Counted from the first letter of the stretch, positions 1,470 through 32,314 are shown. The stretch is DNA of 64,000 nt from Rhodosorus marinus CCMP1338 (GCA_029953675.1 JAMWBK010000007.1:1674001-1738000), one strand, 5' to 3'. Numbers and translations are program-made. The notes: generated from the sequence alone by a model not told the origin.

Positions 1470-3641
1470 TTGACCACGGGGTTTTTTCGGGTGGATGCGA
1501 AGGGTGCGGGGATGGGGACCTTCAACTTTGATGGAGGGATCATTGAGCTTGGCCAGGGCTTTGATTCGTTCAGTGGCAAGGTACGAGGAAGGGCGGCAAG
1601 GACGTCCGAGGGGGGGTTTGTGAGATTTGATCAGACGAAGCTCGATGAGAGTTTGGACGGGCTAATGGGATCGAGGCACCATCCGTACAAGACGGTGGAC
1701 TACGAGGCCAAGATTGTGGACTCCTCCAGTGAGTCTAGTGACTTTCTTAACATCTACGGGGAAGCGGAGTTCAACACTGGAGGACTTGGAGGCAAATTAT
1801 CGGGTGCATACACCGAGACGGAGAAGAAAGCTGGCGATAAGCTTCGGGTTGTTGTTAAAGTTACCGCGACGCAGTCAGTCTATTTCGTAAACCCATTGGA
1901 GATAAGCGTGCCCGACATCCTGAAACCAAGCGACGATTCGAAGGAGGATCAGTTGAGGTTCAGGAGGATGTATGGGAGACACTTTGTACACGCGGTGATC
2001 ATTGGGGGAGAGCTGACTGGCATGGTTGATATCAAGACCAACTTTGGCGAGACGACGGAAGATATAGAGGGCTACGCTGAAGTATCTGGCATCTACAGTG
2101 GAATCAAGCTCACTGGAGGGGTTGGGTTTTCTCTGTTCATGAAGAGGATGACGGAGAATCGAAAGATTGACATCACCATGACGGCGGTGGGAGGAAGCAT
2201 TACACGGGTGCCAGTTTCCGCTTCCGATCTGGTCGAAATCGCAACGGAGTTTCCCGGGCAAGTCTTTGGGACATTTGAGAAGGGGAAGTTGGGGAGCGCT
2301 GTTCCCATTCGAATGATCACGCGGCCTTATGCCCATATTCCAGGATTCAAGAAGATCACCACTGAGCTTGGGGAGCTGGCCAAGTTCCTCACCGACGATG
2401 TGCGGGATATGTTTTTGCAGGCGGATGACGTGGTTAAGAAATTGTCCATCGTGGTTGCGGAGTATTTTCTCTATCACATGAATGAAGCTGACGTACGTCA
2501 GCTCGCGAAGAGCCTCGAGGAGCTGAGGGACATGCAGTTCTACCTGCTCCGATTGTTCACGGAGCTAAACGGTGGGCTCCCGGTCGAGGAAGAAGACGAC
2601 GACCTGACGCCAGTTCAATCTGCGGACTTCATTTTGAGAAAGTTTACTGAGCTCAAACAGCTGCATCCCCGCCCAATCAGCTCGTTCTTGACGGAGATGC
2701 TGGAAACCATCGCTCGAGCCAAGCGACGGTTTGCGTTCACCACGAATTTGGGGGATCCGCGCCGCGAGAAGGAGGTGATCACTTTTCCGAACGGAGTTAA
2801 GATGGTGTCTGGACACCCGGTGCGTTTGGGTGACCAATCTGGCCGTCATCTTGCTCTAAGCCCCGCGCTCATGCTGGATCCTTACAATGGAGCAGAAATC
2901 GTAGGTGAGGGCCTGCGCGAGCAGGCAGAGGAGTTGCTGAGGCAGCAGCAAGGGGACGAAGGAGACGGTGAAGCCAACTCCTCAGATGAGGAGCAAAGGT
3001 TCGGCAGCGAGACAGCCGATATCGACAATGTTGAGGAGGTCCAGATCACTGATATTGAAAGAACTCTCGCCTGGTCCTCCCTGGAAGAGCAAGTCATACG
3101 GCATAGTCCAGATAGCGATGACTTTGGAAGCAGATCAACTCTTGCAAGGGGTCTGTGCATGGGCCATTCGAACGACCTCGTGCTCGTGCATGTCGCAGAT
3201 CATACCGACAACATCGTGTTCTTGGAGATCGTATCGTCTCAAGGGGAGAGGCGTGGTCTTGTGAGGACGGTCTGGCCGTACAGAGGTAGTGGCTTGCTGA
3301 TTGTAGACCCTTTCGGAGACTACACGGAGGTCAAGGCGTTGGCGGACTGGAGCTATTTATTTTATATGCACATAGACGTAGAGAGAGAAGGCGAGCCGCT
3401 GTCATCGTCCTCGCAAAATCACAGCCACTATTGTCTGGGGAGGTTCACTACAGCCGACACCGACCATGAGGTCATCGTCACTAACCACGAATCTTCTGCG
3501 CGCTATTTGCAACCTCTTACGATGCCTAAACTCGTCGCGGATTCACCACGGTCCCGTGATGCGCGGACTCTGCAACAAAATCATGCTCTGGATCTTGTTC
3601 TGGAGCTGATGGCTGTTGAGGAGCTTGTCGCAGAAGCCTAG
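1470..3641 (+). CDS. MACPF-like pore-forming protein, paralogue 1 (likely ATG start at 1512; ~709 aa): MACPF domain, helical region, acidic linker, C-terminal WPYRG module
   Basis: LGQGFD near the N-terminus; YGRHFVHAVIIGG matches the MACPF signature (Y/W)G(T/S)H(F/Y)x6GG; two Gly/small-residue amphipathic TMH-like segments; downstream AVPIRMITRPY is shared with the paralogues. No signal peptide visible. Confidence 0.85.
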   Translation: MTTGFFRVDAKGAGMGTFNFDGGIIELGQGFDSFSGKVRGRAARTSEGGFVRFDQTKLDESLDGLMGSRHHPYKTVDYEAKIVDSSSESSDFLNIYGEAEFNTGGLGGKLSGAYTETEKKAGDKLRVVVKVTATQSVYFVNPLEISVPDILKPSDDSKEDQLRFRRMYGRHFVHAVIIGGELTGMVDIKTNFGETTEDIEGYAEVSGIYSGIKLTGGVGFSLFMKRMTENRKIDITMTAVGGSITRVPVSASDLVEIATEFPGQVFGTFEKGKLGSAVPIRMITRPYAHIPGFKKITTELGELAKFLTDDVRDMFLQADDVVKKLSIVVAEYFLYHMNEADVRQLAKSLEELRDMQFYLLRLFTELNGGLPVEEEDDDLTPVQSADFILRKFTELKQLHPRPISSFLTEMLETIARAKRRFAFTTNLGDPRREKEVITFPNGVKMVSGHPVRLGDQSGRHLALSPALMLDPYNGAEIVGEGLREQAEELLRQQQGDEGDGEANSSDEEQRFGSETADIDNVEEVQITDIERTLAWSSLEEQVIRHSPDSDDFGSRSTLARGLCMGHSNDLVLVHVADHTDNIVFLEIVSSQGERRGLVRTVWPYRGSGLLIVDPFGDYTEVKALADWSYLFYMHIDVEREGEPLSSSSQNHSHYCLGRFTTADTDHEVIVTNHESSARYLQPLTMPKLVADSPRSRDARTLQQNHALDLVLELMAVEELVAEA

Positions 3642-30064: not shown

Positions 30065-32314
30065 TCAAGCAGAGTTGCCATTGCTAGGTACCGACCAAGA
30101 GAACTCTGCTGACCAGTCCGACTCAGTCTCACCACCTGCGGGCCGTGTACAAAGCAACGGACTGAACGCCGGGTCGTTCTCTACCGCGCCAAACATGAAC
30201 AACTCCCAGGCTGGTTTGGTTTCCATCTGATGCGCGTAAATCTTTATCTTTCCGGGTCCTTCATCAATGAATTTGAAGATGTAGCTCTTATCGTCAAAAT
30301 TTTGTTCCAAGGGTGCCAAAGTGATTATCCCGTGCTCCATAAACTGCAGTGTGTGTCTCCAGTACTGACCGTCGGTGGACTGTACCCTTGCCAAATGCTG
30401 CGCCCCGTCGACGATATGAATTCTGAAGTACATGGTGGCCTTGGGCAATCCGAGCGTTGAGGATTGAAATGCCTGAACTGTAGGCCCAGCTCGTACTGCG
30501 TATAAGGATTTCTCAGAGGCAGTGAATTTCTCGTCTTTCATCGATTCCATGAGGAACGCAGCAGTGTCTTTCTTCGCCGCGTCCTGCAGATCGATGCCTT
30601 CTCTAACAAACCTTTCGACATCGACTTCATCTTGATCAAGCAATTCTTCGATTCTTGCTGGAACCCGTCGCTCCAAGACCCTGTGCGTGCCGGAGTCCAT
30701 CTTGCGCTGCAGTTCTTCCCTCAGTTCATCCTCGGAATTCACAGTTTTCAGGAATAGAAGATCGTCCGTCTCCTCCGCAGTTCGATCGAAGATAATTAAA
30801 CTCTTTGAAACAACCCCTTGCAGGACATATGCTTCATCGTCCGCTCCATATGAGAACGACATATATGCTCCACCTGAGATTCGTGTTGTCGTCTCATCAA
30901 CTGATACTAGCGGGAAAGTGTTGTCCAGGAACTTTTGAAATCGAAGCCGCTCGACATTCCGCAGCTCACTTTTTCGCTTGACTTGCTCCCTTTCTCGGAG
31001 TTTCTGGCTTGCCTTCGCACCCTGCGCCTTCTTATACAGGCTTCTCGCCTGAAGATTGTGAACCTGGGGCGGGACCTGAGGATATATCTCCAGTTTTCTT
31101 AAAGCGTCAACAGCTATCTCAGCAGCTTTCTCATCCGCTTCAGCTTCTGCAGCCTTAACTGTTGCCAGAAGTTTTACTTGCATCATCCGCAACGCATCCC
31201 TCTTCTCGCTCAGGTCTCTCAGTTGAGGTAACTGGAGAACGGAGTCTCGATCTTCCATTATATCGGATATTTGTTTCTTCACCTCCTCACAGGACAAGTA
31301 CTTTTCGACCACATCGTCGAGGACGTAGCTGGACAGCCTTGCAAGTTCAGATTCAGTCTTCGAAAAGTCGGGAATTCCCTTGTACTTTGTCACGACCGCC
31401 CTCAGGGGAACCGCCGTTCCGACAAACTTGACAGCATCAACAGTCACCTCTGGGGCCTCTTCTTCCCCCTCGGCTCGATCCCCTTCACCCAGCTGTGTGT
31501 CCTCCAGTTTCTTCCGCTCACCAAGTCCAAATACTTGGGTCGCTCCTGCGCTGCTTACTCCAATTCGCAGGAACGCATCTCCTCCGAACACCATCGCTGG
31601 AAACATTCGAAAGAGCTTCACGAAACTCACCGGGTCCATCGGCACAAGCTGAACACCTCCTCCCTGTATCGAAACCGTTACATTGGCACTTCGACCACTC
31701 GTCATGTTGGAAACCAGCGTATCGATACCAATCTTCCCAGATGCGACACCTTCCTTGCCTGCAGCCGCATCAGCTTTGATGTTCTGCCGGGACTCGTTGG
31801 AATTTGCCTTAATTTCTATCACACCTTCTAACCGCCCTCCTATCTCAAGTGCTGATATGTACGTGTCTCCGAACATTTCCAAGAACGTATCCTGCTTCAG
31901 ACTCAAGTTGTCCAACGGGTTCTTGTTCTTGTCAACAACCGGTTGACCCTTTATTCGGGCCACAGAGTGTCGAACCATGACACTCACCAGCATGTATTCA
32001 TTGGATGAGGTGTCAAGTTTCATCTTTTCAAATTTTCCTTCAACGCTTCCTGAGAATGCGCCTTTCGTGACATTTAAAGCTCCACTGATATTCATAGAGT
32101 CCAGCAGCTCCTTCTTGCTCTCAATGAACCTGTACTTGTACTCAACGGCACTCCCTGGCGATCCGTCCTCCAACCAGTTGTTTTCGTGAAACAGCGTCGT
32201 TTCCTGATCAAGCGCCTCTTCGAAAGGGGAACCCCGGACCGCACCACTGAGAGTATCATATCCAAGTCCAAGACGACACATCGAAGGCTGGAAAGGCACG
32301 AGAAACGACGTCAT
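30065..32314 (-). CDS. MACPF-like pore-forming protein, paralogue 4 (749 aa), with helical region and divergent C-terminal module
   Basis: LGLGYD; FGDTYISALEIGG signature; AVPLRAVVTKY; C-terminal RVQSTDGQYWR..GIITL..SYIF parallels paralogues 1 and 2. ATG start. Confidence 0.82.
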   Translation of the reverse strand: MTSFLVPFQPSMCRLGLGYDTLSGAVRGSPFEEALDQETTLFHENNWLEDGSPGSAVEYKYRFIESKKELLDSMNISGALNVTKGAFSGSVEGKFEKMKLDTSSNEYMLVSVMVRHSVARIKGQPVVDKNKNPLDNLSLKQDTFLEMFGDTYISALEIGGRLEGVIEIKANSNESRQNIKADAAAGKEGVASGKIGIDTLVSNMTSGRSANVTVSIQGGGVQLVPMDPVSFVKLFRMFPAMVFGGDAFLRIGVSSAGATQVFGLGERKKLEDTQLGEGDRAEGEEEAPEVTVDAVKFVGTAVPLRAVVTKYKGIPDFSKTESELARLSSYVLDDVVEKYLSCEEVKKQISDIMEDRDSVLQLPQLRDLSEKRDALRMMQVKLLATVKAAEAEADEKAAEIAVDALRKLEIYPQVPPQVHNLQARSLYKKAQGAKASQKLREREQVKRKSELRNVERLRFQKFLDNTFPLVSVDETTTRISGGAYMSFSYGADDEAYVLQGVVSKSLIIFDRTAEETDDLLFLKTVNSEDELREELQRKMDSGTHRVLERRVPARIEELLDQDEVDVERFVREGIDLQDAAKKDTAAFLMESMKDEKFTASEKSLYAVRAGPTVQAFQSSTLGLPKATMYFRIHIVDGAQHLARVQSTDGQYWRHTLQFMEHGIITLAPLEQNFDDKSYIFKFIDEGPGKIKIYAHQMETKPAWELFMFGAVENDPAFSPLLCTRPAGGETESDWSAEFSWSVPSNGNSA

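Follow-up and report, generated by a model that had tools for sequence, protein, structure and literature searches.

The 64,000-nucleotide stretch of the Rhodosorus marinus CCMP1338 genome analysed here (GCA_029953675.1, JAMWBK010000007.1:1674001-1738000; hereafter, the window) contains, between positions 1470 and 32314, four open reading frames (ORFs) with a common N-terminal domain of ~350 amino acid residues (aa). Profile searches and structure modelling agree that the proteins, designated A-D, possess a divergent MACPF/CDC fold, and on this agreement their membership of the fold is established. A-D are best explained as old duplicates, expressed and kept by selection, within a large and poorly annotated MACPF/CDC clade, and we give about an even chance to the full reading in which they are soluble pore formers that are stored in the cytosol and act on foreign membranes after release.

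Gene A is located on the plus strand (ORF 1470-3641 with a TTG start; 1512-3641 from the first ATG) and encodes 709 aa, identical to the database model P0001; the domain comprises aa 1-~353, further helices are predicted at aa 371-412, and an acidic linker (aa ~480-540) then leads to an orphan C-terminal region. Gene B (3966-6716, minus strand; 916 aa) is adjacent to A and convergent with it, and consists of the domain (aa 1-~355, nucleotides 6716-5652), a very acidic linker and a C-terminal region. Gene C (plus strand; ORF 18444-19592 with a TTG start, 18474-19592 from the first ATG) encodes 372 aa, which comprise just the MACPF-like domain and a helical hairpin; linker and C-terminal domain are both absent. 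Gene D (30065-32314, minus strand; 749 aa) contains the domain, interrupted by a partly acidic insertion of ~40 aa before the AVP strand, and then an orphan C-terminal region unlike that of A and B. A tblastn search with each N-terminal domain found exactly four copies in the window, and the mutual E-values of 1e-8 to 1e-59 indicate that the domains are homologous and not alike by chance. A protein database search returned A (P0001) and C (P0002) from the contig of the window among the matches listed, and not B or D, which may be missing from the source annotation or may have fallen outside the capped candidate list.

The relationship to MACPF proteins of solved structure was evident when profiles were used as queries. 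A profile of the four N-terminal domains matched Aeg-L (E-value 8.8e-6) and Mpf2Ba1 (0.007), and a profile of a 103-member family matched the Aeg-L pore (PDB code 9uj0; 4e-32), stonustoxin beta (1.8e-6), Toxoplasma PLP1 (TgPLP1; 4e-6), Mpf2Ba1 (1e-5) and GNIP1Aa (1.6e-4); a phmmer search of the PDB with A gave only noise. Searches with NCBIfam and PADLOC models revealed no match for A-D or for six bacterial relatives, apart from one weak, chance-level Csa3 match. AlphaFold2 modelling of A residues 1-356 with the family alignment yielded a structure with a predicted local distance difference test (pLDDT) score of 82.3 and a predicted template modelling (pTM) score of 0.79. Counting from the N-terminus, the predicted topology is canonical and includes β1 (61-69), the first transmembrane hairpin region (TMH1, 70-109), β2 (110-126), a helix-turn-helix, the signature, β3 (157-175), TMH2 (176-217), β4 (218-226) and a long helical hairpin (285-352); the helices of the latter are modelled at a pLDDT of about 90, and TMH1 has low confidence. 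A Foldseek search of the PDB with this model found 69 matches with E-values at or below 0.001, and all 50 of the 50 matches listed were MACPF or CDC proteins, the best being Plu-MACPF (2.3e-8, probability 1.00), with TgPLP1, stonustoxin, C8, C6, MPEG1, perforin and pneumolysin among the others.

The conserved elements of the fold can be located in the sequences as well. The first strand of A, LGQGFD (1548-1565, plus strand; aa 13-18, modelled strand 15-18), contains G14 and G16, which are nearly invariant over the 103 family members. TMH1 (1719-1838, plus strand; aa 70-109) lies between β1 and β2 and TMH2 (2037-2162, plus strand; aa 176-217) between β3 and β4, and a degenerate MACPF signature, YGRHFVHAVIIGG (1971-2009, plus strand; aa 154-166), is placed at the start of β3, with G155, G165 and G166 invariant or nearly so in the same family. 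The counterparts of this signature are FGDHFVQAVVIGG in B, YGTGYVSSISYGG in C and FGDTYISALEIGG in D, each ending in x6-GG; their cores, YGRHF in A, FGDHF in B, YGTGY in C and FGDTY in D, are exactly as read in an earlier note on this DNA made from the sequence alone, and the clade consensus is YGDxFV-x5-GG. That note also ascribed the motif AVP..x...[PK]Y to all four proteins, which holds for A, B and D and fails for C, where LVP is found (LVPVAITISKY). Its two TMH-like segments are indeed kept, TMH1 being 40 aa long in all four paralogues and TMH2 38-42 aa. The hydrophobic moment of each of the eight segments is larger at period 2 (1.65-2.74) than at the helical period (1.19-1.74), and this β-periodicity is compatible with refolding to β-hairpins, though it does not imply insertion.

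The N-termini are short. Counted from the ATG codons, LGxG[FY]D begins at residue 13 in A, 18 in B, 21 in C and 15 in D, and the 12-20 residues preceding it agree with the 12-22 estimated earlier, as does the lack of a hydrophobic leader in any of the four; the best 10-residue Kyte-Doolittle mean within the first 40 aa is 0.7-1.2, compared with 2.0-3.2 for the positive control, 28 relatives with visible signal or lipoprotein leaders. No 19-mer resembling a transmembrane helix was found anywhere in A-D (maximum 1.37). The R. marinus transcript of the B orthologue (P0006; contig L002) has a 195-nt 5′ untranslated region (UTR) containing four in-frame stops and no upstream ATG and is colinear with the window up to 6839; that of the C orthologue (P0003; L001) has a 76-nt 5′UTR with an in-frame TAA eight codons before the ATG; and that of the D orthologue (P0153; L003) has a 282-nt 5′UTR with five in-frame stops and only three-codon upstream ORFs, colinear with the window up to 32538. 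Since these 5′UTRs are colinear with the genome and contain in-frame stops, spliced upstream exons encoding signal peptides, which the earlier note had proposed to check for, are excluded for B, C and D, and these three are leaderless beyond reasonable doubt. A is very probably leaderless as well; the window has an in-frame stop 24 codons upstream of its ATG. The A orthologue from R. marinus (P0004) is partial, and its first ~20 residues (MSQRPALETPLQSQPGRKPRLA...) are discordant with A, which it joins at ...TRP(Y/N)AHIPGFKK; it may be a transcript that was mis-assembled or initiated internally, or else an additional copy that is truncated. N-myristoylation of A (MGTFNF) was considered and rejected by inspection, position 6 being F and not S, T, A, G, C or N.

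A HMMER search of representative proteins with the four-domain profile found 1950 sequences at E-values at or below 1e-3 and 493 at or below 1e-10. The clade of Aeg-L-like leaderless MACPF proteins referred to here was defined from this search and is not a curated family; its members start with G-x-G-[FY]-[DN] near the N-terminus, possess a helical hairpin after the core, and have a C-terminal domain that is variable, often a lectin, or absent. A-D show this architecture, and in many relatives the profile match runs to position ~350. Only 9 of 103 clade members sampled match PF01823 at an E-value of 0.001 or less. Among 148 representative relatives from fungi, green algae and bacteria, the first-strand G-x-G motif lies at most 30 residues from the start in 81, which makes the missing signal peptide the norm of the clade and nothing special to Rhodosorus, and a hydrophobic leader is present in 28, which indicates that the module functions outside cells as well. 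Many relatives consist of the domain alone; partner domains found in others include Jacalin, H-type lectin, RicinB, LGFP, PASTA, GON and β/γ-crystallin. The relatives with sources looked up include proteins of Fusarium, Periconia and Cladorrhinum in which the domain is joined to a jacalin or an H-type lectin, together with transcripts from Nephroselmis and one protein from Paenibacillus; no plant protein was found among them, their annotation is either hypothetical or taken from the lectin, and most appear as single genes. The neighbourhoods of four leaderless bacterial relatives contain no recurring partner, protease, NLR-like or sensor gene. One of these relatives (L004, Paenibacillus sp. 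P36) is located in a variable region adjoining a HicAB toxin-antitoxin pair, a YolD/Y-family polymerase and an integrase fragment, and another (L006, a Logan contig) in a variable region adjoining a Vsr/DNA-methylase pair; nothing akin was seen beside the remaining two (L008 and L010), and the four neighbourhoods form no pattern.

The nearest database relatives of A-D belong to the R. marinus (Stylonematophyceae) transcriptome, with ~80-86% protein identity, 82-86% DNA identity and a synonymous divergence (dS) of 0.33-0.49, and near-identical relatives were found in R. marinus only. All four paralogues have orthologues there and are thus kept in both strains, and the orthologues of B, C and D are expressed. 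Identity between paralogues is 22-35%, and the ratio of nonsynonymous to synonymous divergence (dN/dS) against the orthologues is 0.27 for B, 0.24 for C and 0.22 for D (0.17-0.25 for the MACPF core); together these values point to old duplications under constraint, as had been proposed from the sequence. A and B are mutual nearest relatives, and C is the most divergent paralogue, its nearest non-orthologue being encoded by a short contig that was assigned to a cyanobacterial metagenome-assembled genome. Proteins of the green alga Nephroselmis pyriformis and of an unidentified Logan contig are about as distant from D as A and B are.

Beyond the common domain the proteins differ. The C-terminal regions of A and B are homologous (E-value 1e-12) and the tail of D is different, and in A, B and D long disordered acidic linkers precede the C-terminal region. 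The linker of B contains a tandem repeat of 27 bp (5247-5427, and 5419-5474, minus strand; 6.7 copies, 96% matches), encoding (PQLEAETEE)n. The R. marinus orthologue of B is 66 aa shorter at this repeat, and repeat number therefore varies between strains.

According to the reading preferred here, each protein would be made as a soluble monomer in the algal cytosol, as the lack of a signal peptide, transit peptide and transmembrane helix suggests, and would be harmless there without a target membrane, receptor or trigger. Release might occur through breakage or digestion of the cell by a grazer or pathogen, or the proteins might be exported unconventionally; outside the cell, the proteins would oligomerise via the MACPF core on foreign membranes, and the two amphipathic TMH regions of ~40 residues would refold to β-hairpins, producing a β-barrel pore. 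The lineage-specific C-terminal regions of A and B and of D may, by analogy, serve target recognition, and C would be the bare pore module. Action from outside the target membrane is suggested by the lectin partners of relatives together with the truly secreted members of the clade. Export via extrusomes, which the earlier note had also suggested, is an idea conceived with a protist in view, and the closest matches to A-D are to a red alga, R. marinus.

Comparison with known systems provides several partial parallels. Aeg-L ("Aegerolysin-L pore", PDB code 9uj0; 488 aa, 36 chains), by far the best sequence match among solved structures, with the family profile matching over its entire core, is also leaderless and aligns from residue 3, its first-strand motif GQGYN aligning from about residue 10; the conserved blocks follow in the same order, including YGDxF-x6-GG, and the structure was deposited as an assembled pore. 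The identity in the Foldseek alignment is only ~11%, however, the N-terminus of Aeg-L resembles a fungal "MRLGQGFNSYTQ" subgroup and not the algal one, and the Rhodosorus proteins carry unrelated C-terminal regions. No paper describing Aeg-L or 9uj0 was found in the literature searched. Stonustoxin alpha/beta (PDB code 4wvm), of MACPF/CDC fold and with a Foldseek match of 4e-7, is only a distant relative; it has no classical signal peptide, and two paralogues pair to give the working heterodimer, but, unlike A-D, it comes from animal venom and contains PRYSPRY and thioredoxin domains. The MACPF-like domain of the fungal protein BlyB starts at residue 1, as the N-terminal domain does in A-D, and additional C-terminal domains, regarded as adjusting the choice of target, come after it (PMC8624791). 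The aegerolysins, partners of fungal MACPF-like proteins, are leaderless, cytoplasmic and unconventionally exported (PMC7763983). Pleurotolysin B, NigB and BlyB differ from A-D in being two-component toxins with an aegerolysin gene placed head-to-head.

The bacterial insecticidal proteins Mpf2Ba1 (8b6u/8b6v) and GNIP1Aa (6fbm) match A-D in both profile and fold. Mpf2Ba1 combines a MACPF domain with a C-terminal binding domain and is a soluble monomer needing a trigger; the C-terminal domain of both insecticidal proteins is a β-prism. In Mpf2Ba1 it is the first 25-30 residues, and not the C-terminal domain, that block assembly until a gut protease cuts them off (PMC10344926). Because Mpf2Ba1 is inhibited by its own N-terminus, the short segment before LGxGFD (modelled strand 2-5) could, speculatively and by this analogy, be a better candidate for a latch in A-D than the acidic linkers.

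Several results weigh against storage in the cytosol and pore formation on foreign membranes, or limit what can be said of it. With full-length proteins, PF01823 gave 20.9 bits for C, below the gathering threshold of 21.5, and Pfam gave no match for A, B and D; the MACPF label of the earlier note is nonetheless borne out by the profile and structure evidence. The Foldseek TM-scores are modest (0.3-0.4), and the strict signature Y/W-G-T/S-H-F/Y-x6-G-G is matched by none of the four proteins, its spacing and GG being kept in all of them. Pore formation by A-D is our inference from the fold and sequence, and target recognition by the tails is an analogy applied to orphan regions, since neither the A/B tail nor the D tail has Pfam, PDB or database relatives outside Rhodosorus. 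In the full-length AlphaFold2 model of A, residues beyond 413 are largely below a pLDDT of 50. The leader test is a hydrophobicity heuristic, and two scans of metagenome contigs, with the N-terminal domain of A and with P0004, found no match for the 5′ end of the A transcript. Finally, no aegerolysin-like small ORF was apparent on ORF inspection at 6.8-11.4 kb or 32.4-36.5 kb.

Perforation of the alga's own plasma or organelle membranes by these cytosolic MACPF proteins in regulated cell death, e.g., in abortive infection, the main proposal of the earlier note, is unlikely. The proteins would be kept inactive by their C-terminal regions and freed by proteolysis of the linkers, in a gasdermin-like manner or in the way suggested for plant CAD1/NSL1. 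Both gasdermins and plant MACPF proteins of the CAD1/NSL1 type are intracellular, leaderless and linked to cell death, and gasdermins are freed by linker cleavage; the gasdermin fold is unrelated to that of A-D, so the likeness could be a functional analogy only, and C has no inhibitory tail. Such a role would agree with the leaderless, probably cytosolic nature of the proteins, with the presence of orthologue transcripts in a culture transcriptome, which would require some latency, with the long disordered acidic linkers of A, B and D, and with the toxin-antitoxin or restriction-modification genes adjoining two of the four leaderless bacterial relatives examined. Release by cleavage in the acidic linkers, as suggested in the earlier note, finds no support: C ends after the helical hairpin and is equally conserved (dN/dS 0.24), the first acidic stretch of D is the insertion inside the MACPF domain, and many relatives have the domain alone. 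Further, no protease, NLR-like or sensor gene recurs beside the relatives examined, no PADLOC defence model matches, the partner domains of relatives are outward-pointing lectins, a contact between tail and MACPF domain could not be modelled, and the sole autoinhibition known in a solved relative, that of Mpf2Ba1, is N-terminal.

A broader variant, to which we assign a rather low probability, is that A-D form a latent intracellular set of cell-death or immune effectors, triggered by infection or damage and perforating either the membranes of the alga itself or those of an invader inside the cell, perhaps as mixed oligomers, with latency provided by the N-terminal strand or by the orphan tails.

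It is similarly doubtful that A-D are repurposed non-lytic MACPF proteins, like astrotactins, BRINPs and Torso-like, which would bind membranes or partners, e.g., the giant lectin-like products of neighbouring genes, without forming pores; non-lytic MACPF proteins are the subject of a review (PMC5483515). Position 3 of the signature is R or D in A, B and D and not T or S, C and D have G and T, respectively, in place of the canonical H, TMH1 is modelled with low confidence, and the genes cluster with two very large leaderless lectin-domain genes, one of which, the LamG gene, has kept its adjacency to C in R. marinus. On the other hand, the lengths and amphipathic β-periodicity of the TMH regions are kept in all four proteins, the GG hinge is invariant, and 9uj0 (36 chains), far closer to A-D than any other solved protein, is an assembled pore.

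The assembly of the four paralogues into one hetero-oligomeric pore, comparable with the complement MAC or with stonustoxin alpha/beta, would fit either site of action but appears improbable. Both strains have kept the four diverged copies together, A and B are neighbouring convergent genes with a common tail, and the family profile matches stonustoxin beta; most of the looked-up relatives are single genes, though, and the retention of paralogues is equally explained by different targets, the tails being different. Classical secretion via unannotated upstream signal-peptide exons is highly improbable, for although spliceosomal introns do occur in the genome (the LamG gene nearby has one of 87 nt with GT-AG ends) and the 5′ end of A is without transcript support, it is refuted for B, C and D by the 76-282 nt of colinear 5′UTR with in-frame stops, and the start position is kept in the four paralogues and in 81 of the 148 relatives.

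The window is nuclear and eukaryotic in character, with long, mostly uninterrupted ORFs, kinase, SDR, C2H2 and CHD-type genes and fragments of retrotransposons. The cluster of MACPF genes holds two huge genes of lectin type (LamG and ILEI), and some MACPF relatives are fused to crystallin domains. The LamG gene (20853-29045, minus strand), placed between D and C, unites ORFs 26349-29045 and 20853-26315 into one gene encoding a leaderless protein of ~2,690 aa with seven Laminin_G_3 (concanavalin-like) domains; its 87-nt GT-AG intron (26327-26413, minus strand) is missing from L001, the R. marinus transcript, where the orthologue has 2675 aa. The same contig (JGI 3300017118, 10778 nt) carries the C orthologue (plus strand) and the LamG giant (minus strand) tail to tail, so the 3′ ends of these convergent genes overlap or abut; in the window, the gap between C and the LamG gene spans 19592-20853, and their adjacency is kept in R. 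marinus. The second giant gene, between B and C (11458-17289, plus strand), encodes a leaderless protein of 1943 aa with three ILEI (FAM3/POMGnT1-stem-like) domains and a weak N-terminal match to β/γ-crystallin. A perfect tandem repeat of two 80-bp copies (8821-8981) is located in a 4.7-kb stretch at 6.8-11.4 kb that has no convincing ORF, and the sole ORF of at least 150 aa there (9264-9848) has no Pfam match. Retrotransposon remnants occupy ~35700-39750 and include ORFs that resemble integrase/RNase H and reverse-transcriptase pieces (e.g., 35729-35959, 36209-36529 and 36448-36930), with an RVT_1 match at 39103-39735; GC content changes from 0.43 to 0.57 across 34-40 kb.

The absence of a signal peptide from A-D is typical of the clade and is not a discovery in itself. 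What the analysis offers is the assignment of a fold and a likely activity to genes that are publicly listed as "uncharacterized protein" and have no Pfam annotation, and the recognition that ~2,000 representative sequences from fungi, algae and bacteria escape the curated MACPF model. No paper joining MACPF and Rhodophyta for an algal protein was found in the literature searched, and A-D are apparently the first MACPF-fold proteins to be described from a red alga. Should A-D be a latent effector set, they would be the MACPF equivalent of gasdermin-type executioners, in a lineage from which nothing comparable is known. Protein C, with its 372 aa and no accessory domain, would be a convenient minimal member for understanding how a pore former can be stored safely in the cytosol.

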